Source: Bugula neritina (Eukaryota > Animalia > Bryozoa). From it: a stretch of 64,000 nt of DNA. Both the position numbers and the translations under genes were made by a program. The stretch covers positions 6,990,889-7,054,888 of the forward strand of contig OZ037772.1 in NCBI GenBank assembly GCA_964035545.1. The letters are read 5' to 3'. This document shows, piece after piece, positions 1,029 through 63,867 of the stretch (position 1 is the stretch's first letter; each line of letters opens with the position of its first letter). The notes beneath the pieces are model-generated. The model did no database searches. It saw only the letters and a list, made by a program, of their open reading frames with translations, and had not been told where the DNA came from.

Positions 1029-1524
1029 CTGCTGATGTTGAGTACAGAACATATCTTCACACTTCACACAGTAGCATGTCGCTAGTTGACCTTGACATCC
1101 GATGGCTATACAATACAGGGTACCAGGTTGACCCGTTTCTATGGCAACATTTGGTAACTCTTCAACCTCTAATGAGTCGTACTCTTTCCTGTAACAGACT
1201 GATGGGTTTATTACAAGACCTTTAATCATTTTTGTGCAGGACAGAAGATGTGTTTAATAAAAATATATTATTTTCTTCAAATGATTCCTAGCTAAAACTT
1301 GATAGAATGGTTAATAGTAAATAATTTCTTTTTAAAAGTTTATAAGAGCATATTACTCATTCACAAGTAGGGCAGGTCACAGTTTTATGTTTACTGTAAT
1401 GTCCTTGAATACAAGTCAAACAGAATACATGCTGACAAGGCAGCTCTCTGGGATCTCTCATGTCATCTCTTTTACAGACACAATAACCACACTCATACCA
1501 TTCTGGTAGTTCCTGGGCAGCCAT
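1029..1524 (-). pseudogene. TRIM array copy 0: exon 1 (RING, 1361-1524) and exon 2 (B-box 1, 1029-1188); remainder absent or outside the window
   Basis: ATG at 1524 gives MAAQELPEWYECGYCVCKRDDMRDPRELPCQHVFCLTCIQGHYSKHKTVTCPTC (C3HC4). The intron 1 donor reads ATGAGT instead of GTGAGT, so read-through hits TGA. Exon 2 is 160 nt with AG/GT boundaries as in the paralogs. Confidence 0.8.
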
Positions 1525-2721
1525 CTTTGATTGCTTTAAGAATGAAAATGTTTGAGGGACTTTATAAGGTATAAAGACATGTAGTATTGAAATGTTATAG
1601 CAATACTTGTACAGAATACAAAGGCAACTGTGTGTATAACAAGTTGTAAAATATGGATAAAAAACAGTTTTAAAGCACCTAAATTTTTATCTTGAGAGAA
1701 TCAAGTTCAATACTGTTTATGCATTTTCTAAAAGTTATCATCAAGTTCTAAACATCAGCATTTGGTTTCATTCTACATACTTATAGCACTCACCTCTGTG
1801 CCTTTTGGTGGGTCTTGTTTGTAATCAAGTTTGAACTCAAACCTTGGCAGTAGCCTAACTGTCTAGTAAGCAGTTTCATTTTTCAGTATTTTTGTAGCCT
1901 CTCTTCCAAATATTATATAGCGCCTTTACATAATCATGTTATTGTCTTTCAAGGTTTTGTAAGAGTGGTTATATTAACTTTTTGTAATTGGGCTAAGTAG
2001 AGAATTTCTCCATTGTAAAAATTATTGTTCTTATTCAAACGCACAATTAAGTCTATATTGTTATAATAAGCTAACCATGTTTATATTTAAAACCAGAATA
2101 ACATGCCTTCAATAGAGAAAATACCAGCCACCTTTGTCCTTTTTTGTAAAAGGAACAGTTTGAATAACAGTTTGCATAACTCTATAGATCTGTAGATAAT
2201 ATATATCAATAACTGAATATAACATATACTTAGTTCAACATTGCTCAAAACTTAGTTACCCAATCAATAACAATGGACAAAGAGAGTTTCAGTTTTTAGC
2301 AACGTAGCACGTCACCTTTTTGTATATGATTGAATAAAATACTCTGCAAAACTTCCGTAGTATGTGCGTTCTAGCTCTATTAAAGTCGTTGCAGTAAAAG
2401 CGCATGGTGGTTTTATACTTTATAGCAAGGCTATTAGTGTATTGACAAAATTCATATCTATCCACCTGGCTAAGCTAGTTTTTTTTTAAACTCAGGCTGA
2501 CTGCAGTATTCTAAACAGTATTGAATAAAGTTTTGGCATTGCCATCTACAATTAAATAGCTCATTTGTTTCATATGTAATGAGTCCAAAAACATGGGAAT
2601 GACTTTTTTACCTCACTATTTACAACAACTAGGTTCAAGGTCACTCCAGGGTCAGGGTATCAGCGCCTGGTAACCTTTGGCGAAATGAAGACATCTTAGC
2701 AATAAATAACACACTTAGGGC

Positions 2722-2735
2722 GCTTTCGGTTTCCC
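2722..2735 (-). promoter_or_regulatory. ISRE/IRF-E-like motif GGGAAACCGAAAGC upstream of copy 0
   Basis: Matches GAAANNGAAA(G/C)(T/C). About 1.2 kb upstream of the ATG and conserved at 21873-21886. Function untested. Confidence 0.4.
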
Positions 2736-7000: not shown

Positions 7001-9192
7001 TTTCAAAATGTGTTCTTTTCAACACAAAGAAAAACACCAGAACAATGTTTTCATCTTTTTGAAATACTTATTTTTAATCTTAGCCATTTACAAAATAAAA
7101 GAGAAAGAACATTTTTTTATATTCCTTTTTTTCAGGAAGCCAAAACTATGCTACTCAGGAAGTGTGAAGTGTTATAATGAATATCTCCCTTGTGTTAGCC
7201 ACAAAATATGAAATATGCCTCTATGGCACCCCTAAACATAGCTTTCCTTTCTATGATAATAAGGACCAAAAGCTCTAGCTACTTTTAAAACTCTGGCAGA
7301 TTTTGCTCGTGCATCATATGAGATTTAGTATGCTCTAAGTAAATACTTGACTATTTTTCAAAGTACAGATAATACAGACATTTCTTATAACTCAACTAGG
7401 TACTTTTATCAGCTTTTTAAAATTCATCATTATATACTGACATTCAACGTGGAGTAGTTAAAGTAACTGAAGAACTTCACATGTGTTATAGTCAGCTCAA
7501 TGAATACAGCTAGTGATACTGTAAGAAAGACCAAATAGCACTTCAACGTCTGTGGTTTACTAGCAAATGCTCATTAACAGGTAATCTAGAATAATTAACT
7601 TTCCTAAATAATTGATAGGGTACTACAACATTACCTGTGCAGTCTTCTCCATCAATCTCACACTCAACGCAGATCAGTTTGTCACACTTCTTACAAGCTA
7701 TCACCAGAACCTCTTTATGATGTTCACATGTTGGTTTATTAAAGTTTGTTGGTGAGCTCTTGTAGATATCAATGCCTACAACTTTGTGAGCCTCACCAAG
7801 AATTGTCTTATGGTCCTACAGCAATAATAATATAAAAAGCGACTTAAAATAAGATATTTACAATGGTAAAACTATAAAAGAATCAAATTCATTCATACCT
7901 GCGCATATACTGGCATATACATACATCAAAACCTGTACTAGCGTGTTATTGAAGTCACTCGTTGATATTGTCTATGAAGCAAGTGGAACATGCATAACTA
8001 ATTAATATTCTACATGAATCAATTTGGAGATGCAGTAGTTGAACTATACCTGCTGATGTTGAGTACAGAACATAACTTCACACTTCACACAGTAGCATAC
8101 AGCTATTTGACCTTGACATTCATCAGCTGTGCAGTACAGAGTACCAGAGTCACCAGATTCAATGGTAACCTTTGGCAGACCTTCAATCTCCAGTGAGTCG
8201 TAAACTTTCCTGTAACATATTATTGAGTTTAACTGTACAGCTTTCGGACAGTTGTGTGTGCATGTACAGGTCACGTTATATATAATGTTTCGGAAATAAC
8301 ACCTCATCCTATAATCGCTTGTTGACGGTAATTGTTTAAAATGAAAACTTCTGACAAGGTGCGTTACTTCAAATCACTCCATATAATTATACATCTCAAT
8401 CCGGGAAAATTGGGTGGAGTAATTGAATAAATATCAATAGAGCATAACTGTTTTTAATCAGGACTTATCAGATACTTTTATATCATTTTCTCAACTGCTA
8501 CATCTCTCTTAAGGAAGTTCTAAAACTAGACTGCAGCGTCTCGTAACATCATTTATATATAGAGTTGAAGAGTCACTTTTTCTTAATTATGTTTCAACTT
8601 GTTATTGTTTTTTTATCTGCTGCAATTCACTTGTTGGGTTTGTAATTTACCCGAATAAAGTAATTATTATAATATATTTGATTCAAACACACAAGAAACT
8701 ATCTCTCAGGAAAAAAAATCACCAAAACTAGCAGTTAACTTTTAGCAAAACTTTTCGTAAAAAAACAAAAAAACTTTAAAAACCTAACTCCGCAGTTAAT
8801 CTTAAACAAACGCAAAACAAATTTGAAAAATTAGTGTGACACAGCAAAATTGAATTTAATAAAACTTTCTATAAAAAAGATATCTAATGAATATTATTGC
8901 AGTTAAAAAAACTTTTTTTCATTTTCTCAACCAACACAACCAGCAATGTTTTTTCGATTCTTTTATTTTGTAGTTGTCCACGTTTACTTTAGAGTATTGT
9001 GTAGATTATACTTTTTACTCACCCACAAGTTTTAGTAGGGCATGTCACAGTTTTATGTTTACTGTAATGTCCTTGAATACAACTCAAACAGAATACATGC
9101 TGACAAGGCAGCTCTCTTGGATCTCTCATGTCATCTCTCTTAGAGACACAATAACCACACTCATACCATTCTGGTAGTTTCTGGGCAGCCAT
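4093..9192 (-). CDS. TRIM gene A: RING-Bbox-Bbox-coiled coil-NHL-like beta-propeller E3 ligase, 599 aa, intact
   Basis: Exons 9023-9192, 8050-8209, 7635-7815, 6573-6772, 5906-6182, 4539-5210, 4093-4232. All introns GT-AG with compatible phases (2,0,1,0,1,1); total 1800 nt. RING CGYC..CQH..CLSC..CPTKTC; B-boxes CTADEC..CVKC..CTQH..H..H and CEHH..CKKC..CVEC; heptad-rich exons 4-5; six beta-blade repeats (e.g. YPVGLHFLPDGHLL, YSVCTDSNGLIYV) ending LRLFEVQYEEN*. Confidence 0.9.
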
Positions 9193-10945
9193 CTTTTTTA
9201 ATTTCTGACCTATAACAACAAAACACTCAATTTTTTTTAAACAGCCTGCATGCTCCTATGTTGTCATATCACTGTGTAAATTATATAAACATAAAAGCCA
9301 TATTACTTTAAAAAGTATTCAATCTTTATGCTATTTCAAGTCAGAACAACTTGATTCAAACTATCAGCAAAAAACAGAAAATGAAAACTTACCTTTTCAG
9401 ATTTTAAATTAAAATTACAGGTATAGTTAGTACGTGGTTATACTAAAACAGTTGACTGTGAAATAAATTATTGACAAAGTGCAGTAAGCAGTTTTTTTTA
9501 TCAGTGTGGCCTCTGTTCTTAGTTAATCTTTATTCAGATGCTAAACCTTAATCTAAAACTAGTTAACTAGTCAAACATTTGTTTGTATTTAGGCTATATA
9601 GAAAGTTCCCAGTCTACAAATCAGATAAACTTAGTATGTTTACATTGCTATAGTGAGTTATCAGTTATCACCTCATCATGTGATGGGAGCAAAGGGTAAA
9701 ATATATAAGCAATAATTTTCGTTCTCTCATCCAATGTAGCCTTTGATCACTATGTAAATACATGCATACGCTATTTCTTATCAATGCATCAAGGTAAACT
9801 TACTAAAAATGCTATATTAGAGAGTGCTAAGACTTAAGTATGAACTGATAAACTAGCGTAAATCAACTGCGGCTATAAATTATTATTATTATAATTAAGC
9901 GAGCAGAGTTTGTAGCATTTTGTTATAGCGAGACACCATTACAATACAACCAACTGAACCAGTCCATGTTTTACTGAGTATAAACTGATAAACTGGCATA
10001 ATTAAACTGGGGCTATAAATTATTAATAATTATGTTGCAAGCAGAGTTCCTAGCATCCTGGGATTTTTACACCATTACAATGCAACCAACTGCACCAGTC
10101 CATGTTTTACTTAATCTTTGCTTTATATTCATCCCTGGGAAAATACCTAGTCATGGGTGTCAGCAATCATCATTCTTCAACTGGTTGCTGCCTGCCAGTT
10201 GTTTACTCAATAATTAGAAAGGTGTTTGCTGCTGTTGACTAATATCTACTGATAACTGTTGTAAGAGTATTCGCAGTAATGCAAATTATAGTTCAAAAAA
10301 TGTGATTATATAACTGAACAAAGTAAATTCACAGAGTATGCATGATATCCTTTTATATATAAGTATATTTTAATTATTTTTTGACGCAAAATCAGTACAG
10401 AGTAAGTTTATATCCTACTGTATGGAGATACAGGAGAGTATTTGGTAGCAGAGTATTTTTCACTGTGTTTCTCAAAGTTTTCCGGTGGTTTCATAATCTA
10501 ATATCATATTTACTCAACTCAACATATAACATGTTTGTTTTGTGCTCTCATAGGGTAAGGTAGATGAGTTTTGTTTGCACTTTGAGTAGTATAACTACAG
10601 CTAGAACTTTGAATGCTTGCATATTATATTAAATATAAACCATGCTTTCATTCCCATTTCAGTAGCTACTCAAAGCATACTTAAAATTACACAAGTCCTG
10701 CATACAAAATGAAAGGAGTGGTACCCAGTTAACATGTAGTTTCAACATTAGTATTGTGCCAGTATTGGCAAAATGAGAATGTTTCTGTTACTGATTCAAT
10801 TAGTTTATTTCAAAACATTGGAGTTATCATAACAAATTTTAACCCACTTGCAGGAAGTTTTTACTCTTGAAGAAAGTCTATAAGTTTATATGTATATTAG
10901 AGGTTAAAGTACAAAATTAGAGCTATATATTCTTGCTGAATCGCA

Positions 10946-10963
10946 GAAAATGAAACAGAAAAG
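10946..10963 (+). promoter_or_regulatory. Triple GAAA (IRF-like) motif GAAAATGAAACAGAAAAG upstream of gene A
   Basis: Three GAAA half-sites with 2-nt spacing, about 1.75 kb upstream of the ATG. The paralog at 41636-41653 reads GAAAGTGAAACAGAAAAG. A chance match is possible in this AT-rich background. Confidence 0.3.
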
Positions 10964-11246
10964 AGTGAGGCAAGTATAGAAAAGCTAAACTAAAAGCAAG
11001 ATAGCTAATAACACAAAAAATTCATAACAAAAGAAAGCAGCTTTATATAAAAAAGCTGCTTTTGGACAATACCATTACCATTCTCTTCTTTAGATCACAC
11101 AATGAAAGCAAGTGAGTTCCCAGTGAACGAAGTGCATGCTCATAGAATGAATTGAGAATTTATTATGTAGTCAATGTAACAAGCTGCACACTATTTTATT
11201 TGACTTGAATTAAGGAGCTATCTTTTAACTTTGGATTATGCTAATA

Positions 11247-11586
11247 CAGGGGTGACCAATGTCTTTGGAACAAGGGCCACTGAAACTGAATGTCATGTGG
11301 TGAGGGCTATATTGTAAAATTTAGCTTAGGCTAAGGGCCACAGAATCCAAATAACAGCTTTATTCCAAATTCCTATAAATCATTACGCAATAAAGTCCCA
11401 ATAGTTACTGCTGGCCGCATGCTTTTAGCATATATGAACAAAGACGTTTGAAAGGTGGTTTTCCCACTCCAATTTATATACATGTGCAACATAATTTTAT
11501 GTGTTTTGCGTTTGAGGACCACATAAATGCAAATGTAAGCTGGGGCCACATTTAGACCTAGGGGCAGCTTGTTGAACAGACCTCTG
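11247..11586. mobile_element. hAT (Charlie-like) MITE
   Basis: Termini CAGGGGTGACCAA...TTGAACAGACCTCTG, flanked by an 8-bp TSD TGCTAATA/TGCCAATA (7/8). Non-coding. Confidence 0.7.
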
Positions 11587-12282
11587 TGCCAATAGAAATG
11601 AATGCGAAATAAGTTGGCTGAAAATCGCTGGGTGCCGTAATATATAAATAACTAATGTTTAGCTCGTATAAGCTTTCACAAACTTTATAAACTGATAGCT
11701 GCATTTTTTGCCAACATTATTTGATACTGATTTAACTCAATAATATTAGCTTTGATTAGTTAGACCAGGAAGTTAAAAGCTAATGCAACGTTCATGTTTT
11801 ACATAAAGGACTGTTACCTAACAATTATTTTCACGCGTCTATGCTAAATGCATGTAATGCAGTTTTTTGACGGAAAAGTTGAAGACATTCTCATTAAGTC
11901 ATTTAGAAAGCTTCCTGAGTTTGTAACAACAATGCATTTACATGCACATACTGAGATGTATCAAATATAATATACTGTTTATAATATATTCTTAATACGT
12001 GTAGAGTCACTGTTGAGTCGGTCTATAGCTAGAACTCGAAAGATATAAAATACTTTACTATTACTACAATAAAACTATTCATCACACAGTTCAAGTCCAT
12101 CTCTCCTCTCTCTAGTTAGACAAGGAGTTATGTTCTTTATTTATTTGATCCAAAACCTAACAAATTGTTACAATAATAAAATGTGATTATACTAATTGCA
12201 TCTAAAAAAATAAAACTATCCAATATATATTGTCTTTTAGGTTTACAAAAGTGTTATAAATTTTAGGTAATAAAATTATATA

Positions 12283-12893
12283 CAAGACAATGAATGGAGT
12301 AGAAGCTTGCAGCCTCTCTTGAAAAGAAAAACTGTATGTCACAGAGGACGACATGGAAAGTAATGCTTACAGTATTTTGAGATAAAAAGGTGCTATATAA
12401 CTTTGGACTTCAAGAGCTAAGATAACGATGTGAACCCTGAAAACTACTGTGAGCTCTTGACTGTGGTTTAGCAAGACATAAGAAGCAAGAGAGCAGACCT
12501 CTAAAATATAGGAGTTGTGTTCTACCAAAACAATGCTCACCCACATACTACTGTGTGAACAACGGCTAAAATTGAAGAACTGGGTTGGGGGGTGTTAGTA
12601 CACCATCCTTATAATCCAAATTTTGCACCAAGTGATTTCCATCTTTTTGGACCATTAAAGAGCCACATGAGAGACAAGCACTTTGCTACTGATGCAGCAG
12701 TCATTGAAGCTGAGCGCAACTGGTTCAAAACTCAGAATTCTATTCTGCAGGGATTGAGAACCTTGTATGAAAGTGAAACAAGTGTATAAAGAAAAAAGAA
12801 GACTACATTGAAAAGTGAAGATTTGTAAAGCTCCATTTTATTCTAATACAAAATTAATACAAAATTCCCACTAATTATTGACTGACCCTCTTA
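12283..12893 (+). mobile_element. Degenerate mariner transposase 3' fragment with right terminal repeat
   Basis: Broken translation GKVMLTVF*DKK, QNNAHPHT, EELGW.VLVHHPYNPNFAPSDFHLFGPLK (YSPDLAPSD motif of mariner), DYIEK*. Terminus ATTATTGACTGACCCTC-TTA. Confidence 0.85.
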
Positions 12894-13038
12894 CATGATT
12901 ATATTACAATCTATCAACTTTCAGTAATCTAATTAGCAAGTGATTTAATTGCTTGCCCTTGAAGTAAAAATCAACCTAAGTATGTAATATGTGACAGTAT
13001 TCAATGCGTAGTAATAAAGTAAGTACGTTTTGTAATGT

Positions 13039-13945
13039 TTATTCACTCCAGCAAGGAGAAGCTAGTACGCCGTCTTCTATACTGATTGCACTATTTATAA
13101 CTCTTGGCAACTTGTCATGACTAAGCTTTTTTAGTGAGACACCTGTAAAATATAATCAAGAAATTGTTGTAAGCAATCGATCAATATTCTCTTAGAAAAT
13201 CATAGAGTATGTATAATCAGAGGTATAAAATCTGGTTATATAATGTCAATGCATTGATAATCCTCTTTTGTAAACTATCAACAACACATAATATGTGTTG
13301 TTGATAGTTTACAAAAGAGGATTATCAATGCATTGACATATTATATTTACAAGGCATAGGATGTTTTAATTTGGAATGTATTTTACAAATAACAAATGCA
13401 GTAAGTACTTTACATGTATTGTATATGTGTTAACGATGTTGTGTGAAAATGTGTGAAAATTTCAGGAATTTTCAAATTGATAAATGTTGCAGCAATAAAT
13501 TTGAAGTTTGAAAAATTTTAAGTTTATCTCTTTTTTTGCTAATTAAGTTGGATGGCCGTATTCAAATCACTACTTAATAGATCGAAGCTTTATCCACAGG
13601 AGAGATAATGTAGATAGCTTTTACATAGTTAACTGCACAAACATAGATAAGCCCATTAGAATCCGAGCAGACTCCACTGCCTTTGTTCAAACCATCACAT
13701 GTCCAGACTGTTGTCAGCTTTCCATTCTCTACTTTGTACTTTATCAGTTTGTTTCTACCAACTCCTAGCAGATGACCATCTGGTAGAAAGTGTAGACCAA
13801 CTGGATGCACATTAGAATAAATAGTCTCTGTCTGTTTAGTGATGAAGTCATAGATGATCAGCAGTTTAGTATCTGAACTCTTCACCACCACATGTCTGTC
13901 GGAGACTGCCGTTGTTGATGCACTAGTGCCTGTTTTAATAAAATG
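13039..13945 (-). pseudogene. Orphan TRIM propeller fragment: 3' half of exon 6 (about 13594-13945) plus exon 7 (13039-13142)
   Basis: Translates AVSDRHVVV..YDFITKQTETI..HPVGLHFLPDGHLLG..YIISPV. The donor is mutated GT to AT. Exon 7 (GVSLKKLSHDKLPRVINSAISIEDGVLASPCWSE*) has a premature TAA. Confidence 0.85.
13243..13339. repeat. Perfect palindrome, 48-bp arms with 1-nt spacer
   Basis: 13243-13290 is the exact reverse complement of 13292-13339. Confidence 0.95.
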
Positions 13946-14175
13946 CAACTTATAATACTCTTCTGGCCTGTAAGAGGGTATGTAAAGTTACTCATGAAGT
14001 TTGTTTATGACATCTTGTTTTTTATAAAAACATTTCTTTTAATTTTACTGAATAAAACCAGGTTATGCAACCCGTAACATTCAGATAATATAATGTTATA
14101 TGTCGATCAACGTCAAAAAACTATTTATTTGATACTAGAAACAATTGTGGAAAAGCATTTGAGTGGAATACGATA

Positions 14176-14313
<138 letters not shown>

Positions 14314-14692
14314 GTAAAAATTTGCGTTTATGTCTACACGTGGTGGAAAGCTCTTTTCGTTTGTTGAGGGAAGATAATTCCGGTTGTTTTAAAATTATAT
14401 ACTTCTCATAGTTGCATAAATTACATCTATTGGTTAGGTTTGAGTATGATTTGCAAATCTTTAAAATATTCCATTTTAAGCTGAATTTCGTTTTGTTGTC
14501 TTTTAAATTCCAGATGTGTCTGCTGAGTTGCGTGCTGTTAGCTTTATCTGCATGTAGGAAAGAGGCTTTGTGGTTATTGAATCTGGTTTTGAAGGTAGTC
14601 GAACAGAGTCCTATGTATGAATGGCTGGAATTATTGTCATGCCTTGTTACAGTTGCTTGGTATATTACGTCTTTGTATAAGCATTTACCATT
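14314..14692 (-). mobile_element. Penelope-like element fragment (C-terminal GIY-YIG endonuclease)
   Basis: Open frame [69 protein letters not shown]. Bounded on both sides by TA repeats and absent at the paralogous TA tract at 57794-57928. Confidence 0.85.
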
Positions 14693-17600
14693 TATATATA
14701 TATATAAAGCAATTATTACTTTCTTATAATATGTTAATAGCATTTTGATAGGTTTTTTTCTGACAATAATGATGAATTGTGTCATTCCTTAGAAATGTTA
14801 CACTAATTTTCAACATAATTAAGCTGTTATTTATTATGTTAGTTGAAATATTAATTCATAAACAACAAATAGTTTCGCAATCGTGAGGAGTTTATTAGGA
14901 TATAATACTTTATTGACATAGTATAAATCACGAGCAAATGATGAAACATTTTTAGGCATTGCAATTGGACATATACTCACGGTGTAATATTATAAAACAA
15001 ATTTGGTATTAAAAGAATCTTTAAAATGCTTAGTAATTATAAGTATTACAATATGTTACATTAAGATATGCATATACACTTATAGGCATTACGAATTTAT
15101 AGTGATACATGAATTATATAAGATGTAATAATGATACTACATTTACTTTTTATATAATCATAAACATATTGTTATTTTAGTTAAAGGGCGAAAGGCTTTA
15201 AAAAGCTACATACACAGATGTGCAGTTTCATGGCAAGATGGAATTATTTTTAAAGTACTATATATAAGTCAAATAACCAATGTGCAATAATCAGCAATCA
15301 ACAGCTAGTTCAATTGACTACTTCAAACATGTTCAGGTTGTTATTTTGAAGAGATACAGCTTCCTGTCATCCCAACCAGGTACAGCCAGTATTCCATCTC
15401 TGATACTTGGTTCTCCGGCAAATACAGTTGGTAACTTATCATGAGTCAGTGTCTTGAGAAGGCCATCTGTTTAAAAAAAGCATAAAATACAGTGGTAATG
15501 ATGTTGAATTACACTAAGTTTTATACAGCAAAATAAAAACATCTGCTACATTATAGCAATTTACTCTAGGAACCAAGAATTATATTATCCATTCAACGAA
15601 AGTTTGATATGTTACATAAAAAGAGTATTGAGTACATTTGAGCCACTAATTTTCATACTATAGTAATTATTGATATTAGCAAAATTAGTGTTATTTCCGA
15701 CTTAAGTTTGGCTCAAAGCTCATATATCTAATACACTTTAATTTATCCATCTCTTGTATTCAGGGGCTCTCACTTGTTTCTACATATTTTTTCTATTATA
15801 CCTGAATAATATATGCTAATTGATTTTTATTATAAACCGTACCTGATGGAGAAAGGATGTGAAGGGATTTCAAACTTTTTCCAGAAACATAGATGAAACC
15901 ATTAGAGTCTGCACAGACACTGTATCCGTCTGTTACATCATCACATGTCCAGACTGTAGTCAGCTTCCCATTCTCTATTTTGTACTTTATCAGTTTACCT
16001 CCACCAACTCCTAGCAGATGACCATCTGGTAGAAAGTGTAGACCAAAGGGATACACGTCAGGATGAATAGTCTCTGTCTGTTTAGTGATGAAGTCATAGA
16101 TGATCAGCTGTTTAGTATCTGGATGATCCACAACAACATATCTGTCAGTGACTGCCATTACTGCTGCACCATCACCTGTTCTATCAAACTGAAACAGTTG
16201 TTGTCTCTTTGTGATGTCACCAGCTAGACACATATCTACCCTAGATATGCCATCTTCTCTGTGTAGAATGAATGCATTCTGAATAGTCTCAATTACCCCT
16301 GTTACTACCTTCTCACTTGTACTGTATTCACTCATCTCATTACCATCTCTACTCAGTAACTGTATTCCATTTCCAGTACCTATGAGTATGTCACCATCTT
16401 GTCTGTGATTGGCTGAGTAACACCCACCACTTGTCTCATGCTCAGATATGAATGTCAGTGAAGAAGGAACTGTTACTAGACTGACATTCAGCAGTCTACT
16501 TGTGTCCTCACCTTCAATATAATATGATGTAAAACTGGTCAAGTATGCTTCTGACTAATCATTCTTATGCAAAATCCTTTTACAAGCTTATTAGAAATTT
16601 ATTTATTAAACTAGCAGCTTTTGCAAATAATAGTTTAACTTGGCTTTTACAGCGTGCTTTTAGAAATCATTGTCCAAATTGAAAGCCGCCTACAGTTTTA
16701 GCATTCTATTGACATCTATAGAAAACTAAAAACATCACTGTGTCATTGTTATATTACAGTATATTGTTGTTTTATATTATCATTGTCATATAGCAGTAAA
16801 TCAGTTAAATTTTTATTAATCTGCATCTGTTTTGGTTACATTGACAAAGAATTTGGTTCATAAAATATATTGTCCATGTTTATTTTTGTTACCATTTTTT
16901 CTAGTTTGTTTAGTAAATTATTGTCCACATATCTACCAGAACATGGAGGGGGAGAAAGAAAATATAATTCACAAACAATATACTTTATAACATTATGACT
17001 AAATTAAAGCATTTTAAATCGAGGCAGATTTGCCGGGCACACAAGCATTCTCATATTAGTTTTTGGAGAAAAACAACCTTTATATACTTCAGAATGGCAT
17101 AGGATATGCATCCTCCCATTAAAAATTAAAAAAACAACCTATGTAGCCCAGAATGGTAAAATAATAGTTTTCTGTGTTGACAGCTTACTTTTCTGTATAA
17201 GTGTTCAAGTTAGAACTCTGATTTTATATGTTTACTGATAAAGCGATGCAAAACATATATCTCATGAAATGAAGACAGCTTACCTGTGTGTATCAGAGTT
17301 GGTGGATCAGCAAGTTCACAATCATCCAGTTTATCTGCCTCATGTTTGTCCAGCTTTTCTGCTATTCTCTTTTTCTGCCTGATCTGCTCAGTTACATGAC
17401 CATCTTTTAGAAGTCGAGTTAACTCAGTTTGTGTTTTTTTTCAACCCATCTTCTTTTGTCATCAGCTTGGTGTGAAAGCCTTCAACCTTGGCTGTCATTT
17501 TTTCTTTGTGGTCTCTAACTTTGTCTATCATTCCTTGACTCTCCAGCCTTATTTTTTGTATCTGCATAAAATATATAACCAGTTTTTTACCATTTCTAAT

Positions 17601-17698
17601 TGTCAACTGATTTCCAGAACATTGAACAAAGAATTCCATGTTGACAATAACCATTATATTATTGTCTCTCAAATATACAAAGCATAAAACGTTATATT

Positions 17699-17752
17699 GG
17701 GATTTGTAAATAGTGAATACAACCATGGTTGTATTCACTATTTACAAATCCC
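17699..17752. repeat. Perfect palindrome, 27-bp arms, in gene B intron 4
   Basis: GGGATTTGTAAATAGTGAATACAACCA|TGGTTGTATTCACTATTTACAAATCCC. Paralogous introns carry only the left arm. Confidence 0.95.
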
Positions 17753-46989: not shown

Positions 46990-49900
46990 TTGCTACCGAT
47001 CTAGAGAAGGTACAAGCTGTGAAGGAGTGGACTTTCCCCCGTGACCTCCCTGAGTTGCGTGCATTCCTGGGCCTAGTAGGGTACTACCGGCAGTACATAC
47101 CTGGTTTCGCAGGAGTGGCTCAGCCGTTAAATCGGCTGACCGCAAAGGGAGTCCGGTGGCAGTGGACACAAGAAGAGCAGCAGGCATTCGACCACCTCAA
47201 GCAACAGCTAATAGAAGCGCCAATCCTGGCGTATCCTGATCCAGCCAAGGAGTACATCCTGGACACCGACGCCAGCAACCACAGCGTGGGAGCCGTCCTG
47301 TCTCAAGTCCAGGGTGGAAGTGAGGTGGTCGTGGCTTACTATAGCAAGACTCTTGCGGCCGCCAAGAAGAACTACTGCACCACTAGGAAGGAACTCCTAG
47401 CAGTAGTCAAGGTGGTCAAGCACTTTCGGCCATATCTGTATGCGAAATCGTTCCATTTGCGAACAGACCATGCATCACTGATATGGCTGTGTAAACGTGC
47501 AGAGCCCTCGAGCCAGGTGGCTCGTTGGCTAGATATTCTTGCCGAGTTCTCTTACCGGATAGAGCACCGTGCAGGCCAGAAGCATGGGAACGCCGACGGC
47601 ATGAGCCGCCGGCCGGTAGAGGACTGTGAGTAATGCCTGCACATTGAACAGCGGGACGGGGGACCTGCTCGCCTTGACGTGGAAACGGAGCTAGTGGAGG
47701 GCACCGCCTACCGGTGGGAGCACGGTCATCTTTGGACCGAAACCCACCAGGACGGTTTCCAGGCGCTCCACGCCAACCCTACTCTGCACCAGAACGTCAA
47801 GGAGCTGTGTCGACTCCAGGAGACGCTACCCGGCGCGGTAGCGGACATCTTCCGGGCCAAGAAGAAGGGCCGACGACCTAGCGAGGAACAGCAGCGGCAG
47901 GGAGACGTTGAGTTCCAACTCCTCTGTCGTCGCTGGGATGCCCTCAAGGTCAGTCCTGGTGGCCTCCTGATGATAACGTTAGCAGCAGACAACCGCCAGC
48001 AAGAGAGGGACCACGTCGTCTGTCCACGCGCCCTCCGTCGGGAACTGATTTGAGACACCCATAAGCAGGCTCATGCTGGAGTCAGTCGGGTCATCAGGTG
48101 TCTGCGGCTGCGTTGGTATTGGCCCGGAATGACTCGGGGCGTACGACTGCGGGTACGGCAATGCGAGGTCTGCCAAGCTAGCAAGCATGGCCGCCCCACG
48201 GAAACTACTGGTCGACGCCGGCTGTACGCTGGTCCACCGTGGCAAGTAGTGGCGGTAGACCTCGTCGGGCCTATGCCGTTATCCGCCAGAGGGAACACCT
48301 GAATACTGGTGCTCACGGACCACTTTACCCGGTGGGCGGATGCTCTGGCTATTCCAGACGCAACCGCCACCACAGTGGCCCGGACCCTAGACCAAGATGT
48401 GTTCTGTTACCTCGGCTTGCCCGAGCAGATACATACGGACCAGGGCGCCCAGTTCCAGTCCCAGCTCATGGGAGACCTCTGCCGGATATGAGGGGTGAAC
48501 CAGAGTCGGACCACCCCATATCACCCGCAAGGGAATGGAGTCGTCGAGCGGAACAACAGGTAGTTGGGGGACGCCCTCAGGAGCCTGCTCCTTGGTCGAG
48601 GTCAGGAAGAATGGGATGTGGTGCTGCCGCAGATCATGCGGGCCTACCGCAGCACACCACACTTCGCCACGCAGGAGACCCCAAACTTCCTGATGCTAGG
48701 CCGAGAGACGCGGGTCCCGGAACACCTGACGTACCATGTTCCTGCCCCCGAGTCACCGGTACACGAATATGTGGAGGGTCTGCTGCACATCATGGGCAAA
48801 GCTCATGATGCGCTGCGCACCCACCAGTGGCAGACCCATACAGAGGACTCAGAGGAGCCCCCGTTGTACCAGGTGGGAGACTGGGTCTGGATGGTGAGCT
48901 ACCGTAGGCGACGGGGACAGTCGGCTAAGCTTCAGCCCAAGTTCGTCGGTCCCTACTGCGTAGTGGAGGTGCTGCCCAACCACACGTACCGTGTGGAGCG
49001 CTCTGGACAGGTCTCCGTCCAGAGCGAGCAGCGCCTCAAACCTTACCATGCCAGCCCAGACGCGGTGGGTCAGGCTCCACCCCTCCTGGAGCCCCACCGT
49101 CAGCCCAACCGTCGAGGACGGGCCACCCAGCCCCGAAAGGTGGAAATTGTGGTTCCCAGAGAGTCGGACCAAGAGCAGGCCGCCTTGATAGAGCAGCTGG
49201 AGCGACAGCAGAGAGAGGAGCGGGAACAGGAACAGCGGCATACCCTAGGACCACCACCCTCCCTGGGGGAGGACACCCCCACCCCCGTGTTGGGTAAAGG
49301 CGGGGACCCCCCTACTAGGGTAGCCCAGGAGACACCAACACCACCGGTGCCTGTTCCAATTGAGAGGAGCCAGCGGTCAAGAAGATCCCCCAGGTATCTG
49401 GCAGACTATGCTGTAGGGCACCTGGAGTGGCCCCCTCATAAGGACAACCCACCCAGTACGGACGACCACCCCATCTTGGCTGGAAATTCCCTCCATCACC
49501 CCAGAGAATTCCACCAAGAAGAAGATTTCACACAGCTAGCACGTAAGTTACAGCTTAAGTTGAATTCTAATCCTGTGATACCCCTAAGTATAATTTAAAC
49601 ACTGTTATTCAGACACTAGCATCAGCTATGGGAATTACCTCGCCAGATACCCAAACAGAGGAGCGTAAGGATACCGAGGAGGCCAGTTGATCCGACTCCC
49701 CTCCCTCACCAGCTCCTGTTTTAGCTCCCCGCAGCCAGCAGGACGACACCCCCTCTTCCGAGGTGTGTTTCGCCAGCGTTAGTGGCCCTGACCCCGAACC
49801 GGTTGAGCTCCAACTCACAGCTGGGGAGGAGCAGGGCACTCTATACCGCGACCACCTCGCAGGCAGAGACGAAGAGGAGTCTCCAATACTGGCAATGCCT

Positions 49901-50300
49901 CGGGCCCTGGTCGCCCGCCAGTATTGGATATCTGGAGCACCAGGCAGCCAGATAGAAGAACAGACTCAGCCAACCCACCCACAATTGCCCCGTCACGGGC
50001 AGAGTATGGCACTTTCTTACCGAGAGTGCGTCCTTCCTGGATAGCGCAATCGAGGCCTGGTCCCGTATCTTCGACCCAAGCACAGAAGAGATAGAAAGCC
50101 TGGTGCACCACCTCCAATGATAAAACCGGACAATTAGGGGCTGCTGGCAATAGCCACCCGAACTGTATATATTATCGTGTTACGTGTGATTAATCATAAT
50201 ACTTTTCTGTTAACCGCATATTTTTCTACGTTGTGTTTCATTTTTTTTGTGGAGTCTTGTTTTGTTATCGAAAAGGGGATGCTTTTCGATGGGGGGAGAA

Positions 50301-50834
50301 TGTAATGGATTCTCATCCTCATTATTATAATTACTGTTGCGTATATGTTTTGAATGCTGTAATTGTAGCTAAGTTGGGCTAGCTTTCTAATGCCTTATTA
50401 TTGTGATTGTTGTTAAAGCTTTCAGTATAATGTAATTTTCATGAAATACGCATTCCAGAGTTATTTCTTCTTTTTGCTATTTTATCGTTTTGCATTAATA
50501 CTGATACTGGAAATTTGTGTGGCTTTTATGAATACCTTCAATAGGTTGGCCTATTGAATTATTCGTTTTCCTTTGTCTACTTTTCTTTGTTTCTGTCAAG
50601 CTTAACTTTCTTTTGTCTGTTGGAACATTCTAGATGTGAAGTCTTGTGTATAAAAGCAGGCGAGTTTCCAGTAATAGTTCAGACTACTACTGGAGCTCGC
50701 TAGTAGTAGGGCCCTAAGCTGTATCTGATACAATAAAGGTTATCCTCATTTGTACTCAAATACTTGGCTTATTCTCTCTAACACAAAGAGTATGTCCAGG
50801 CACTAGTTGCATTCATAACCCACAGTTTACTACA
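50301..50834 (+). repeat. 3' LTR of the Gypsy element (534 bp)
   Basis: Begins TGTAA after the PPT and ends CTACA. Contains TATAAAA (about 50649) and AATAAA (about 50732). TRIM intron 5 sequence resumes at 50835. Confidence 0.85.
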
Positions 50835-53068: not shown

Positions 53069-55103
53069 CTGTCTGTATCAGAGTTGGTGGATCAGCAAGT
53101 TCACAATCATCCACTTTATCTACATCATGTCTGTCCAGCTCTTCTGTTATTCTCTTCTTCTGTCTGATCTTCTCAGTCACATGACCATCTTTTAGCAGAC
53201 CAGTTAACTCATTTTTTGTTTTCTTCAAACAATCTGTTTTTGTCATCAGCTCAGTGTGAAAGCCTTCAACTTCAGCTGTCATTTTTTCTTTGTGGTTTCT
53301 AACTTTGTCTATCATCTCTTGACTCTCTTGCCTTATTCTTTGTATCTGGAATTTAAATCAATTTTTGTATCGTTTCTTGTCAGCTAATTGCCAGAACACT
53401 AAGCAAAGAGTTCGATGTTGACAATAACCATGATATTATTGTCTCTCAAATATATAAAGCATGAAGCTTCATATAGAGATTTGTAAATAGTGAATGCAAC
53501 CATCTCTAAAATGTCATGCAATCTGGTTAAATTTCTGGCATGTTTTTTTGAATACTTGTTTAGTATAGATTTCAACATTGCCTAAACTTTTGAATGTTTT
53601 ATTGATTTGAGAAGGCTAATAATCTTATCATGATATGATTTGCCATGAGTTAATCTTTGTTATTAAAAGAACATTTATTTTATATTGAAATACTTCCAGA
53701 AAATAATTCCATAGAATGACTGTACCCACCATCTCATCTCTAACTCTTTCTATCTCTGCTGCCATGGCTCTACATTTTTCTTCCTGAACATCTAACTCTT
53801 TCCACACTTTCTTGTCCTGGGAATACACTTTATCTATCTTCTGTGATACTGTCTCTAGCTTCCCTCTGAGATATTCATTTACTTCCACTTTCAGGGATGT
53901 AAGAGACTTCAAGTCATGTTGACCTCCATCTGAAATGTACAGACATATTTTACCACAACGTTTTTAATAATGACTGTATATGAAAAGCAATCATAATCTA
54001 TTTTTGACCAAAGTACATATTATGGTATAAGTGTAATTTTGAGATTTGTGGCGTAGCCTGAATGATATACGCAGCGCTAGAGTTGTACATTGTACCTTAA
54101 ACACTGTAAATAGTAAAGTAATGTCTTAACTGGAAAGAGTAAGCAAAACCACTGATTTTGAAATATGTTTTTTTTTTCAAAAACAAAAAAAAACACTAGA
54201 ACAATGTTTTCATCTTTTGAAACACTCATTTTAATTTTAGCCCTTTACTAAATAAAGTAGAGAGAATATTTTTTAAATTCCTCATTTTCAGGAAGCCAAA
54301 ACTATAGTGCTACTCATGCAGAAAGTGTGAAGTGTTATAATGAATATCTCCATTGTGTTGTCCGCAAAATGTAAAATACGCCTCTATGGCACCCCTAAAC
54401 ATAACATTTCTTTCAACGGTAATAATGACCAGAGGCCCTGACTATTTTTAAAACTAGCAAACTAGCAAATGCTCATTAACAGGTAATCTAGAATAATTAA
54501 TTGTCTTAAATAGTTAGTAAATTACTACAATATTACTTGTGCAATCTTCCCCATCAATCTCACACTCAAAGCAAATCAGTTTATCACATTTCTTGCAAGC
54601 TCTCACCAGAACCTCTTTATGGTGTTCACATGTTGGTTTGTTGAAGTTTGTTGGTGAGCTCTTGTAGATATCAATATCCACTACTTTATGAGAGTCCCCA
54701 AGAAATGTCTTATGGACCTATAGTAATTTTTATGAAAATCAATATAAAATAACACATTTGCATTGGCAAAATTATCAAAGGACCAAGTTCATTCACACAG
54801 ATATACATACATCAAACTTTGTACTATAGCATGTTATTAAATTCACTCATTCATTTTGTTTGCAAAGCAACTTGAATCATAAACAATATTTTGATGTTGT
54901 GAATGAATTAACTTAGAGATGCAGTAGTTGAACTATAATATACCTGCTGATGTTGAATGCAGAACATAACTTCACACTTCACACAGTAGCATGTAGCTAT
55001 TTGACCTTGACATCCATCAGCTGTGCAGTACAGAGTATCAGAGTCACCAGATTCTGTGGTAACCTTTGGTAGACCTTCAATCTCTAGTGCGTCATACAAT
55101 TCC
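53069..55103 (-). pseudogene. TRIM gene D: exons 2-5 only (B-box, B-box, coiled coil); RING and propeller exons missing
   Basis: Exons 54944-55103, 54537-54717, 53730-53929 and 53069-53345 have canonical sizes and open frames. Intron 1 runs into a Gypsy fragment at about 55362 and intron 5 into an LTR at 50834. Confidence 0.85.
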
Positions 55104-57786: not shown

Positions 57787-57928
<142 letters not shown>

Positions 57929-58554: not shown

Positions 58555-61500
58555 TCAGGTTGTTATTTTGAAGAGATACAGCTTCCTGTCATCCCAACCA
58601 GGTACAGCCAGTATTCCATCTCTGATACTCGGTACTCCGGCAAATACAGTTGGTAACTTATCATGAGTCAGTGTCTTGAGAGGAGCACCTGTTTATTAGA
58701 TACACAAAATACAGTAGTAATGATGTTGAATTACACTAAGTTTTATACAGCAAAATAAAAACATCTGCTACATTATAGCAATACTTTATGAACCAAGAAT
58801 TATATTATTCATTCAATAAAAGTTTGATATGTTACATAACATTTCAGTAAAATTAGTGTTATTTCCAACTTAAGTTTGGCTCGAAGCTCATATATCCAAT
58901 ACACTTTAATTTATCCATCTTTTGTATTTAGGGGTTCTCACTTGTTTCTATATATTTTATCTATAATGCCTGAATGATATATTCTAATTGATTTTTATTA
59001 CAAACGGTACCTGATAGAGAAATGATATGAATGGATTTCAAGCTTTTTCCGGAAACATAGATGAAACCATTAGAATCTGTCCAGACACTGTATCCTTCTT
59101 TTACATCATCACATGTCCAGACTGTAGTCAGCTTTCCATTCTCTACTTTGTACTTTATCAGTTTATATCCATCAACTCCTAGCAGATGACCATCTGGTAG
59201 AAAGTGTAGACCAATTGGATACACATCAGGATGAATAGTCTCTGTCTGTTTAGTGATGAAGTCATAGATGATCAGCTGTTTAGTATCTGGAGGATTCACC
59301 ACAACATATCTGTCAGAGACTGCCATTACTGGTACCTTGTTATTTGTTCTATCAAACTGAAACAGTTGTTGTCTCTTTGTGATGTCACCAGCTAGACACA
59401 TCTCTACCTTATCTATGTCACCTTCTCTGTGTAGAATGAAGACATTCTGAGGAGTCTCAATTAGTCCTGTTACTCTCTTCTCACTTGTACTGTATTCACT
59501 CAGCTCATTACCATCTCTACTCAGTAACTGTATTCCATTATCAGTACCTATGAGTATGTCACCATCTTGTCTGTGATTGGCTGAGTAACACCACCCACTT
59601 GTCTCATGTTCAGATATGAATGTCAGTGAAGAAGGAACTAGACTGATGTTTAGTAGTCTACTTGTGTCCTCACCTTTAATATATAATATAAAACTGGTCA
59701 TTTATGTGTATGTATGCATCTGACTAGTCATTCTTATGCAAAATAATTTTGCAAGCTTATTTTAAATTTATCAAGTAGACTAGAAACTTTTACAAATAGT
59801 AGTTTAACCTAGATTTTACAGTGTGCTTTTCAAATTATTATTCAAATTGAAAGCCGCCTACATTTTTGGTATTATCGAAATTTATAAAAAATTTAAAACG
59901 TCATTGTGCCATTTTTATATTATATTGTGGTTTTATATTATCATTGTCATATAGAAGTAACTCAGTTCAATTTATATTAATCTGTATCCGCCTTTGGTTA
60001 GATCGAAAAAGAAGATTTGGTTCATAAAAAGAAATTATTGCAGATGTTATGACTGCTAGTTTTCAGCAAGAGATTCTAACATAGAGGTTGATCAAGAATG
60101 AAACAATTGTATTCCATATGACATGTGCTCATGCAGCAACAACACTTTACTATTATTGTACTCTATGTTTCAAAATATATTGTACTCAAGTATTATTGAA
60201 CACTAGTGTAATGAGCACATTTTCATTGAGTGATATTGGTTTACTATAGAAAATTCCTATATATAGCAGATCACTCACATGGCACTTAAATTGTTATTCT
60301 AACCCATCTTTAAGATTGTTAAATGTGTTTTTTTGCTTAAGTGAGCAGTTAATTTATTTAATAAGCTTTGCTTGTAAATATAATTGCAGTTAGTAAACCT
60401 CAAGTGCTTTGTTGGATATCGTTTGCGCATGCATAAGTTTCACATTAAATTTTCTGGGCTGCAAAAATTCTGAGCAATGATTATAATTTATTTGAGATTA
60501 TTATTCAAAAATATGCAGGCTATATTATTTTATATACGTTATATTATAATGTTTTGAACTATTTTTGTTTAAATGATTCTTTAGACAAAAAACCTATAAT
60601 ATTTTTATATTATCTGACGTATTGTATAGTCTCCTTATAATTAACCACAAGTAAATTATATTATACTCTCATTCTAAAGATGTATTAGTCCTCTCTTTGT
60701 TTACCTGGGCTATCTCAGGCTTGGTGGTTGACAAGGATAAAATTTTGTTGCAGCCAATTTTATACTGAGATACTCTTAATCAAAAATCTCACAAATATAG
60801 TAATCTTAAATAGAGTGTCAGCTGCAGGAAACCAAAAGTCAGTAGAAATTTGTTTTTACTCGTTAATTTTGGTTGCATAAATTCCTGTAATTTAGATTTT
60901 ATATTCCATACACTAATATTTTAAACCATCTGAATTTATCATTTTTATCCGCATTTTCTTTCTGCATGTTTACTTTTTCAAACATAATTTATGTAGGTTT
61001 GCCGGCCTACTACATAAATCTGAACGATATAAATGACTTACTTTAAACATATCTAAAACAAAGAGCAGTGAAAGAATTCTATACAGCAAACTGACACCTT
61101 CATTTCGTGCAAATAAAATTTTGTATAAAAAAACAAGCAAAACATCATATTATTGTCTGATTTTGAAATAGTTGCAAGTCAATAAAAATGTAAATCTTGT
61201 AGTTGTATCTCTCTTAACAGATATTGATAACAGAAACTGAAACTATGTTGTGGTTACTATAATTATATATAGCTAATTTTTCCCAGTCTACATAGAGTTT
61301 CTGAATTGATAATTATTAATTTTTATTACCATTTTTGCTATAGTCTATTCAGTAAATTACTGTGCAGGACCTGCCAAAATATGGAGGGGAGAAATAAAAT
61401 ATACATTACTCACTAACAATATGCTTTATAACTTTATGACTACAAAGCACTTTGAAACAAAGCAGATTTGCATTGCATACCTCCTATTATTATTGGGAAG

Positions 61501-63867
61501 AAACAACCTCATATATACCCTAGAAAGGCATAAGATTAGTTTTCTGTGTTGACAGCTTACCTGTGTGTATCAGAGTTGGTGGATCAGCAAGTTCACAATC
61601 ATCCAGTTTATCTGCATCATGTCTCTCCAGCTCTTCTGTTATTCTCTTCTTCTGTCTGATCTTCTCAGTCACATGACCATCTTTTAGCAGCCCAGTTAAC
61701 TCAGCTTGAGTTTTTTTCAACCCATCTTCTTTTTTCATCAGCTTGGTGTGAAAACCTTCAACCTTGCCTGTCAAATTTTCTTTGTGGTTTCTAACTTTGT
61801 CTATCATCTCTTGACTCTCCTGCCTTATTCTTTGTATCTGGAATTAATAATCAATTTTTTCACCGTTTCTTGTCAGCTAATTTCCAGAACACTGAACAGA
61901 GAAGATTGAATGTTGACAATAACCATTATATTATTGTCTCAAATATATAAAACATGAAGCTTCATATAGGGATTTGTAAATAGTAAATACAACCATCTCT
62001 AATATGTCATGCAATCTGGCTAACTTTCTGGCATGTTTTTTTGAAAACTTGTTTATAGTAGATTTCCACATTGCCTTATTTCATGAATGTTTTTTGCTTT
62101 GAGAAGGCTAATAATCTTATCATGATATGATTTGCCATTAGGCAATTTTTTGTTATAAAGAGAACAAGGATTTTATATTGAAATACTTCCAGAAAATAAT
62201 TCCATATATAGAATGACTGTACCCACCATCTCATCTCTAACTCTTTCTATCTCTGCTGTCATGACTCCACATTTCTCTTCCTGAACATCCAACTCTCTCC
62301 ACGCCTTCTTGTCCAGAGAATACACTTCATCTATTTTTTGTGAAACTCTCTCCAGTTTACCTCTGAGATACTCATTCACTTCCACTTTCAGGGATGTAAG
62401 AGACTTGAAGTCATGTTGACCTCCATCTACAATGTACATCAAAATCTTACCACAACATTCTTTATTCCTGACTGTATATGAAAAGCTATCATATACGCTA
62501 TTTTTTGATAAAAGTACACTTTATAAGTGTACTTTTGAGATATGATGTTCAGCATAGCTTGGATAATATACAGTATTAGGGTTGTATTGTACTCAAAACA
62601 CTTTAAATAGTAAAGTAATGTATGCCTTAACTGGAAAGAGTAAACAAAACAACTGACTTCCAAATACATTTTTTTCAAGAAAAAAGAAAAAACATTATAG
62701 AACAATCGTTTTGCCTTTTTGAAATACTTTTTTTTAATCTTAGCCATTTACAAAATAAAGAAGAAAAAATATGTTTCAAATTCCTTATTTTTAGAAGGCC
62801 AAAACTAGTGCTACTCAGAAAGTGTGAAGTGTTATAATGAATATCTCCATTGTGTTATCCACAAAATGCCAACTAAGCCTATATGGCACCACTAAACATA
62901 CCAAGAACGCCTTCATGATGACAATGACCAGAAGCCTTAGCTACTTTTAAAACTCTGGCAAAATTTTCTTGTGCATCATAGGAAATATAATATGCTTTTA
63001 GTAAATGCTTGACTATTTTCAAGTACAGATATTACAGACATAATTTCTTATAACTCAACCACCTTTACCAGCTTTTTAAAAGTCATCATTATTAATTTAT
63101 TAAAATTCAATGTGAAGTAGTTAAAGTAACTGAAGAACATCACATGTGTTATAGTCAGCTCATGAGTACAGCTGGTGATACTGTAAGAAGGAGCAATTAG
63201 CGCTTCAACTTCTGTGGTTTCTTAACAACTGATCATTAACAGGTAATCTACAATAATTAACTTTCCTCTAATAGTTGGTATAACTTATAAGTTACTACAA
63301 TATTACCTGTACAATCTTCTTCATCAATCTCACATTCAAAGCAGATCAGTTTATCACACTTCTTGCAAGCTCTCACCAAAACTTCTTTATGGTGTTCACA
63401 TGTTGGTTTATTGAAGTTTGTTGGTGAGCTCTTGTAGACATCAATACTCACTACTTTGTGAGAATCCCCAAGAAATGTCTTATGAACCTATAGTAGTTTT
63501 TGTGAAAATCAATATAAATAACATATTCACATTGGCAAACTTATCAAAGAATCAAATTTCTTCACGCAGATATAATATATACTTCAGCATTTGTACTATA
63601 TAACATATTGTAGATTTCATTTAATGATTTTGTCTATAAAGCAAGTAGAACCATTACCATTAATATTGTAAATAAATCAATTTGGAGATGCAGTAGTTGA
63701 ACTATACCTGTTGATGTTGAGTACAGAACATAACTTCACACTTTACACAGTAGCATGTAGCTATTTGACCTTGACATCCATCAGCTGTGCAGTACAGAGT
63801 ACCAGAGTCACCAGAGTCTATGGTAACCTTTGGTAGACCTTCAATCTCCAGTGAGTCGTAAACTTTC
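58555..63867 (-). CDS. TRIM gene E, exons 2-7 intact (RING exon expected beyond window end)
   Basis: Exons 63708-63867, 63307-63487, 62227-62426, 61561-61837, 59011-59673, 58555-58688. All introns GT-AG with canonical sizes and open frames; ends KLYLFKITT*. Confidence 0.88.

Follow-up and report, generated by a model that had tools for sequence, protein, structure and literature searches.

A tandem array of TRIM-type genes with one variable propeller face in the bryozoan Bugula neritina

The bryozoan Bugula neritina carries a tandem array of TRIM-type genes, the products of which are predicted to combine a RING finger, B-boxes and a coiled coil with a divergent six-bladed propeller. The stretch analysed here, referred to as the window, comprises 64,000 nucleotides (nt) of contig OZ037772.1 (C8:6990889-7054888) from assembly GCA_964035545.1 (216 Mb, 321 contigs). 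Searches with translated open reading frames (ORFs) and Cys/His patterns located nine whole or partial units of one 7-exon gene in it, all on the minus strand. An initial annotation of this DNA had described nine same-strand copies ranging from intact to fragmentary; all were found, and the outer limits it gave (1029 and 63867) coincide exactly with exon ends. The array is a lineage-specific, fast-turnover tandem family of TRIM-type genes in which all states of decay are present. The hypervariability of its propeller is real but local, being restricted to one face: comparison of the copies shows that the propeller scaffold is under purifying selection, with a ratio of nonsynonymous to synonymous divergence (dN/dS) of ~0.5, whereas the D-A and B-C loops of every blade evolve at or above the neutral rate (1.2-1.4). 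The explanation favoured here, which is considered probable though far from secure, is that these genes form a family of RING/B-box/coiled-coil ligases whose divergent six-bladed propeller has become a diversified recognition repertoire.

Gene structure, domains and distribution of the family

The gene model was built by hand from the sequence of gene1 (9192-4093), an intact copy with a coding sequence of 1800 nt that encodes 599 amino acids (aa) in seven exons and contains no internal stop. Its exons encode the RING (9192-9023), a B-box1-like segment (8209-8050), the end of B-box1 together with B-box2 (7815-7635), the first and second parts of the coiled coil (6772-6573 and 6182-5906), blades 1-5 of the propeller (5210-4539), and blade 6 with the stop codon (4232-4093). 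Every gene1 junction is GT-AG. When the junctions were projected onto the other window copies and onto 200 kb from the same cluster, AG or GT was present exactly at the projected position in nearly every exon of about 20 paralogues, which share 55-80% aa identity. The junction between exons 6 and 7 is also present, as predicted, in the GenBank B. neritina protein P0021 (EB796_008252). Furthermore, residues 1-596 of spliced gene1 align with all 619 residues of the Watersipora subatra RefSeq protein XP_067933727.1 ('TRIM25-like'; 33% identity, E 4e-110), which is encoded by one uninterrupted intronless ORF on OY755160.1 (10001-11860 of stretch L025). Given this collinearity with an uninterrupted ORF, the seven exons do encode a single protein. 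No second copy of the Watersipora gene was found within 10 kb on either side of it.

The RING exon comprises 54-56 whole codons and is therefore missing from a list of ORFs with a 60-aa minimum, as the initial annotation had pointed out in describing it as shorter than 60 codons. The same annotation had warned that automated methods may fragment these genes, and this is the case in GenBank, where the B. neritina members retrieved over a search range of 145-462 aa are propeller-only fragments of 220-280 aa. The best protein matches of the window are likewise B. neritina entries named 'hypothetical protein EB796_*'. Since the public B. neritina annotation splits the genes, family counts taken from such annotations are wrong.

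Exon 1 scored above the Pfam cut-offs for zf-RING_UBOX (32.3 bits; cut-off 25.2), zf-RING_2 (29.7; 27.3) and zf-C3HC4 (28.1; 21), and all eight zinc ligands of this C3HC4 RING are invariant in 12 copies. Its best sequence match in the Protein Data Bank (PDB) is TRIM2 (E 8e-6). Exon 3 matches zf-B_box with 29.2 bits (cut-off 24.1), while the Cys/His pattern across exons 2-3 resembles B-box1 with a weak Pfam score (E 0.16). Exons 4-5 of gene1 align without gaps to the coiled-coil part of XP_067933727.1, for which the AlphaFold model contains a 114-residue helix at 185-298 (predicted local distance difference test score, pLDDT, 85-91) and a return helix at 301-320. The predicted order in one polypeptide is RING, then B-box, then coiled coil, as in TRIM/RBCC (RING, B-box, coiled-coil) proteins. 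Thus, the domains expected of the spliced proteins were recovered, the RING and B-box by Pfam and the coiled coil and six-bladed propeller as AlphaFold predictions for the Watersipora homologue.

The propeller is closed and modelled with pLDDT above 90 in XP_067933727.1, and the model of P0021 is a six-bladed propeller with pLDDT 81.9 and a predicted template modelling (TM) score of 0.80. Structural superposition of the P0021 propeller with VIA-align placed a YWTD propeller, that of nidogen, at the top with Z 19.5 and gave Z 17.2-17.8 for the NHL domains of TRIM2, TRIM71, Mei-P26, Brat and Lin41, with root-mean-square deviations of 2.7-3.2 Å over 207-216 residues, and 17.8 for SGL lactonases. 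Foldseek searches of the PDB were less informative and returned only generic WD40, Kelch and designed propellers (TM ~0.55). At the sequence level, Pfam gave the propeller no family above cut-off, only generic propeller matches below threshold, and no SPRY/PRY match was obtained in any exon. A profile of 66 sequences searched against PDB sequences gave no significant match either (Thin, E 0.43; TRIM3, E 0.71). The initial annotation had called the propeller NHL-like. This description appears to hold for the predicted fold, which belongs to a common class, and does not extend to family membership, as specific NHL homology beyond the fold is not established.

The family extends well beyond the window. 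The propeller exon has ~35 matches with 64-100% identity between 6.63 and 7.22 Mb of C8, in both orientations, and in this ~0.6 Mb cluster 30 matches to the RING exon were obtained, with identities of 89-100%. A second cluster of propeller exons with ~50% identity lies at 9.31-9.42 Mb, weaker families occur elsewhere in the genome, and at least 121 related RING exons were counted genome-wide among the 150 scored of 315 candidates. A profile search of 1.84 billion representative sequences returned 572 clusters at E up to 0.001, and the best 150 of these 572 are mostly single-exon ORFs of 200-300 aa. The named full-length members looked up among the matches listed are from Watersipora. When metagenome contigs were scanned, no relative of exon 6 was confirmed.

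Selection on the propeller and exchange between exons

Divergence was calculated for each exon by pairwise Nei-Gojobori comparison of 12-16 copies (15 for exon 6). The RING is nearly frozen (exon 1: dN 0.027, dS 0.13, dN/dS 0.21). Ratios were also low in exon 3 (dN 0.107, dS 0.61, dN/dS 0.18) and exon 4 (0.20, 0.81 and 0.25), and intermediate in exon 2 (0.151, 0.40 and 0.38), exon 5 (0.150, 0.39 and 0.39) and exon 7 (0.28, 0.71 and 0.39). The propeller exon 6 has the highest ratio (dN 0.12, dS 0.18, dN/dS 0.66), yet it is not the most diverged in amino acids, and it is better conserved than its flanking introns (88% vs 73-77%). Within the window, dN is 0.02-0.09 in the N-terminal exons compared with 0.10-0.38 in exons 6-7. 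Across the wider cluster, however, the coiled-coil exon 4 is among the most diverged (dN 0.36 and dS ~2 between groups). The proposal of a constant effector half joined to a variable recognition half is accordingly only partly retained: the RING is nearly frozen and one propeller face is variable, but over the cluster as a whole the exons for the coiled coil show deep divergence, and each gene is a mosaic of exons.

Codons of exon 6 were assigned from DSSP on the model to strands, to D-A and B-C loops (the top face by convention) or to A-B and C-D loops (the bottom face). The 46 codons of the top-face loops gave a pairwise dN/dS of 1.23 (bootstrap 0.78-2.03) and a tree-based count of 1.40 (199 nonsynonymous to 39 synonymous changes). 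The corresponding values were 0.51 and 0.57 for the 123 strand codons and 0.54 and 0.53 for the 35 codons of the bottom-face loops. Top-face loops exceeded the remainder of the exon by permutation of the pairwise values (p 0.007) and by Fisher's test on the tree counts (p 2e-6), and the tree counts exceeded the neutral expectation with a one-sided binomial p of 0.026. Most of the hottest positions are in top-face loops, one or two per blade; the hottest, position 61 of P0021, has a nonsynonymous to synonymous count of 18.8 to 1.2 and eight different residues among the 15 copies. In P0021 numbering, the hot positions are 42-44, 46, 61, 83, 104, 127-129, 143, 170, 186, 209 and 226-227. Variation in 33 B. 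neritina sequences from public databases falls on this same face and at these same positions (mean entropy 1.38 vs 0.58 and 0.64; p 7e-10 and 4e-6).

The exons of these genes have had different histories. Self-comparison of the window reveals mosaic blocks with 80-96% identity. Between window copies and copies ~0.3 Mb away, dS is ~2.0 for exon 4, 0.74 for exon 3, 0.53 for exon 5, 0.19 for exon 6 and 0.10 for exon 1, a 20-fold spread between exons of the same genes, and for exons 6 and 1 the between-group value is no higher than that within groups. In addition, two old types exist both of exon 7 and of the final exon 6 loop, and they are independent of position in the array. The genes are therefore exon mosaics, since between-group dS differs widely by exon and the exon 7 types ignore position. 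RING and propeller exons have been exchanged or homogenised across 0.4 Mb, while deep lineages persist in the coiled-coil exons, exon 4 keeping two old types. This contrast in exon dS (0.1 to 2) points to gene conversion at the level of exons, and the exon-to-exon synonymous differences make the array a clean case for the study of gene conversion in multigene families.

Explanations for the array

To our knowledge, TRIM families that diversify their recognition domain under pathogen pressure are known only as SPRY-bearing genes of vertebrates. In TRIM5 and finTRIM proteins, the variation is found in surface loops of the C-terminal recognition domain, where dN/dS is at or above 1. The vertebrate group 2 TRIMs (TRIM5alpha and the fish finTRIM and btr clusters; Sardiello et al., 2008, PMC2533329; Boudinot et al., 2011, PMC3137616) share with the bryozoan family a RING/B-box/coiled-coil chassis, lineage-specific tandem clusters with pseudogenes, and a conserved N-terminal half. 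They differ in that their recognition domain is a B30.2/SPRY domain, whereas the bryozoan genes encode a six-bladed propeller and display prominent exon-level mosaicism. Antiviral activity and induction belong to the TRIM5/finTRIM type, while the bryozoan family is known here from its genes alone. Such dynamics have been reported only in SPRY-bearing vertebrate TRIMs, with the non-SPRY group conserved and group 2 absent from invertebrates (Sardiello et al., 2008; PMC2533329), and the NHL TRIMs (class VII, or subfamily C) constitute an old, small subfamily (Marin, 2012; PMC3503706). Literature searches, which returned many false matches to 'trim' software, yielded no account of bryozoan TRIM expansions that carry a propeller, no report of selection acting on such expansions, and no analysis of the related Watersipora and mollusc families.

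Proteins of the TRIM-NHL type (TRIM2, TRIM3, TRIM32, TRIM71/LIN-41, Brat, Mei-P26 and Abba/Thin) likewise possess a RING, one or more B-boxes, a coiled coil and, at the C-terminus, a six-bladed propeller of equal size; RNA binding through the electropositive top face of that propeller is a feature of the class. The bryozoan family has no filamin domain, as is the case for TRIM32. However, TRIM-NHL genes number a handful, compared with tens to hundreds in the bryozoan family, whose presumed binding face evolves fast, and YWTD and lactonase propellers score as high as NHL domains or higher against the bryozoan propeller. Watersipora XP_067933727.1 has the same full-length architecture and is intronless, unlike the 7-exon tandem genes described here. 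By language-model features, the nearest sequences are mollusc 'hypothetical protein' clusters of the ESM Atlas (0.94), which serve as a lead only, with no alignment or E-value.

A pattern of diversifying recognition is recognised in the array because an intact catalytic module, a constrained scaffold and one fast-changing face occur together with many young copies, pseudogenes and gene conversion. If the genes do encode a diversified recognition repertoire, the coiled coil would dimerise the protein, the RING would recruit a ubiquitin-conjugating enzyme (E2), and the propeller face of each paralogue would bind a different ligand, either protein or RNA, which would then be ubiquitinated or sequestered. 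The array would represent a germline-encoded repertoire of recognition specificities, in which copies are duplicated, lost and converted while selection acts on the binding face, and diversity is maintained in this way. By analogy with the vertebrate families, the likeliest ligands may be non-self or selfish molecules such as viruses and retroelements, an immune reading that is offered tentatively and falls somewhat short of probable. Should it be true, evolution would have reached the same solution with another recognition scaffold, and comparative immunology would gain a candidate receptor family that can be tested, in a phylum for which immune genetics hardly exists.

A more specific proposal is that bryozoans evolved a large germline repertoire of TRIM receptors acting inside the cell, independently of vertebrates, in which a propeller face replaces the SPRY loops, exon-level conversion is the main generator of diversity, and orphan modules of the 3' part of exon 6 with exon 7 serve as donor cassettes. 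These modules would then act similarly to the pseudo-V segments that are donors for chicken immunoglobulin genes. This proposal is regarded as a long shot.

A number of points weigh against a diversified recognition repertoire. On the top face dN exceeds dS by a modest margin, with a bootstrap interval that spans 1, with the result that the positive selection anticipated by the initial annotation is retained as variation concentrated on one face (dN/dS ~1.2-1.4) and is less certain as an excess over neutrality; relaxed constraint confined to the top face would give a similar picture. The counts are based on a small sample, 15 copies placed on a tree that recombination certainly violates, the alignment had been viewed before the structural classes were set (the classes themselves follow DSSP only), and the top and bottom faces were assigned by strand order and not by coordinates. 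The propeller is not demonstrably an NHL domain by Pfam or profile search, as no match to Pfam NHL (PF01436) was obtained for exon 6, exon 7 or P0021 even with E allowed up to 1, and the TRIM-NHL proteins known so far regulate RNA in development and are not immune receptors. Moreover, many of the copies are disrupted, and part of the family could be in decay. The only sequencing run found to contain the stretch consists of DNA contigs, in which introns and exons are covered alike and which hold no splice or expression information.

Some of these points would also fit neutral birth-and-death, in which the array is a by-product of unequal crossing-over and retroelements, most copies are becoming pseudogenes, and the variable face consists of tolerant loops. 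Two of the nine window units are certainly intact, two retroelements lie within the array, strand dN/dS is fairly high at ~0.5, and the top-loop interval takes in 1. On the other hand, 9 of 13 units in the adjoining 200 kb of the cluster are full-length open genes that keep all splice sites, the RING is strongly constrained (dN 0.027), exon 6 is more conserved than its introns, and the same architecture persists in Watersipora, a distant cheilostome. Nor does the freedom of loops explain the pattern, because the bottom-face loops are as constrained as the strands (0.53). Neutral turnover is judged unlikely, though it retains real weight. A rather improbable alternative is that the genes are endogenous regulators resembling LIN-41, Brat, Mei-P26 and TRIM2/3/32, which bind host RNA or protein and whose paralogues have been subfunctionalised, for example between zooid types. 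Canonical TRIM-NHL genes are few and slowly evolving, and the non-SPRY TRIMs belong to the conserved 'group 1' (Sardiello et al., 2008; PMC2533329), whereas in the bryozoan array there are tens of young copies, their binding face changes fast and pseudogenes are frequent. In the retrieved public B. neritina set none of the copies was matched above 88%, which may reflect either fast turnover or a different species or lineage, and Pfam NHL is without a match. The resemblance to such regulators consists of the superposition of the propeller on the NHL domains of TRIM2, TRIM71, Mei-P26 and Brat (Z 17.2-17.8), the position of TRIM2 as the nearest RING in the PDB, and the mollusc clusters nearest by language-model features, in which 18-62% of members carry Pfam NHL.

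The array might also have been produced by the assembly itself, if haplotypes or collapsed repeats had been laid out in tandem by mistake. The segments 7904-12964 and 38730-43670 are 94-96% identical, which is within the range of heterozygosity in marine invertebrates. However, the copies differ by 4-20% in a mosaic fashion, with different exon 7 types, retroelement insertions and truncations, and the same organisation continues over 0.6 Mb in both orientations. In an independent GenBank assembly of B. neritina, the longest contig given for the paralogue EB796_015750 measures 61,249 bp, as does that given for the paralogue EB796_015754, and the two are taken as one shared contig. In the DNA run, summed contig depth over exon bins is 10-30 times that over intron bins, which is what numerous real paralogues would be expected to give. 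An artefact is accordingly considered barely credible, and the copies are treated as a real tandem family rather than concatenated haplotypes.

Copies and retroelements in the window

Of the nine minus-strand units, two are intact, one carries a single frameshift, in a homopolymer, two are cut off by the edges of the window, one is without its 5' and 3' ends, and three are fragments. Besides gene1, the intact copy is gene3 (28401-40017), which encodes 596 aa in a coding sequence of 1791 nt without stops. All of its projected splice sites are present, and its exons are located at 40017-39848, 39035-38876, 38024-37844, 36983-36784, 36402-36126, 29702-29040 and 28540-28401. The sole defect of gene2 (15333-20673; exons 20673-20510, 20126-19967, 19868-19688, 18176-17977, 17561-17284, 16511-15843 and 15466-15333) is an exon 5 that is 1 nt too long, with A8 at 17434-17441 in place of the A7 of genes 1, 3 and 5. 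This may be either a pseudogene frameshift or a homopolymer error in reads or assembly.

At the left edge of the window, gene0 is represented by its RING exon (1524-1361) and B-box exon (1188-1029), the remainder being located beyond the edge. At the right edge, gene5 (58555-63867) has open exons 2-7 (63867-63708, 63487-63307, 62426-62227, 61837-61561, 59673-59011 and 58688-58555), and its RING exon lies ~700 bp past the edge at C8:7055574-7055732. By comparison, gene4 (53069-55103) comprises exons 2-5 only, all of them open (55103-54944, 54717-54537, 53929-53730 and 53345-53069); a search of the window found neither a RING exon upstream nor a propeller exon downstream of it.

The fragment fragA (13039-14020) is situated 1.3 kb downstream of gene2 and comprises the 3' part of exon 6 (14020-13598; 62% aa identity, with a stop) and a partial exon 7 (13142-13039). 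Similarly, fragB (26393-27216), 1.2 kb downstream of gene3, contains the 3' part of exon 6 from residue 94 (27216-26826) and exon 7 (26532-26393), both open. Orphan modules of this kind, consisting of the 3' part of exon 6 with exon 7 or of exon 7 alone, recur 1-2 kb downstream of complete genes, both in the window (14020-13039 and 27216-26393, minus strand) and elsewhere in the cluster (C8 ~6684768-6684898 and ~6812406-6812540). Such modules may have been left behind by unequal crossing-over, or they may represent alternative 3' exons or donors for conversion. The third fragment is an isolated piece of exon 5 (residues 50-92) at 44143-44271, adjoining the second of two retroelements.

The first retroelement is a Ty3/Gypsy-type long terminal repeat (LTR) retrotransposon of 4.5 kb on the plus strand (31529-36064), bounded by 141-nt LTRs that are 91% identical (31529-31669 and 35924-36064). 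It matches Pfam zf-CCHC, RT_RNaseH, Integrase_H2C2 and rve, and its gag, reverse transcriptase, RNase H and integrase ORFs are interrupted. The insertion lies within gene3 intron 5, ~60 nt downstream of exon 5. On either side of the element the sequence is collinear with intron 5 in genes 4 and 5, and the gene3 ORF is still intact. The second is a degenerate Ty3/Gypsy-like element, also on the plus strand, with approximate limits of 44300-50830, a GC content of ~0.5 vs 0.32, and RT_RNaseH and integrase SH3 ORFs; no LTRs or direct repeats were detected for it. This element occupies the expected place of gene4 exons 6-7. The homology of gene4 intron 5 stops at ~50835, against the element, and the stray exon 5 fragment (44271-44143) lies on its other side.

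Overall, the window is AT-rich (GC ~0.32) except for two insertions with GC 0.43-0.5. A 216-aa ORF on the minus strand at 14135-14785, between fragA and gene2, has a (TA)n-type microsatellite alongside and no Pfam match, and is probably part of another mobile element. A long TA-rich microsatellite at 520-969 is the source of spurious minus-strand 'YIYIYI' ORFs.

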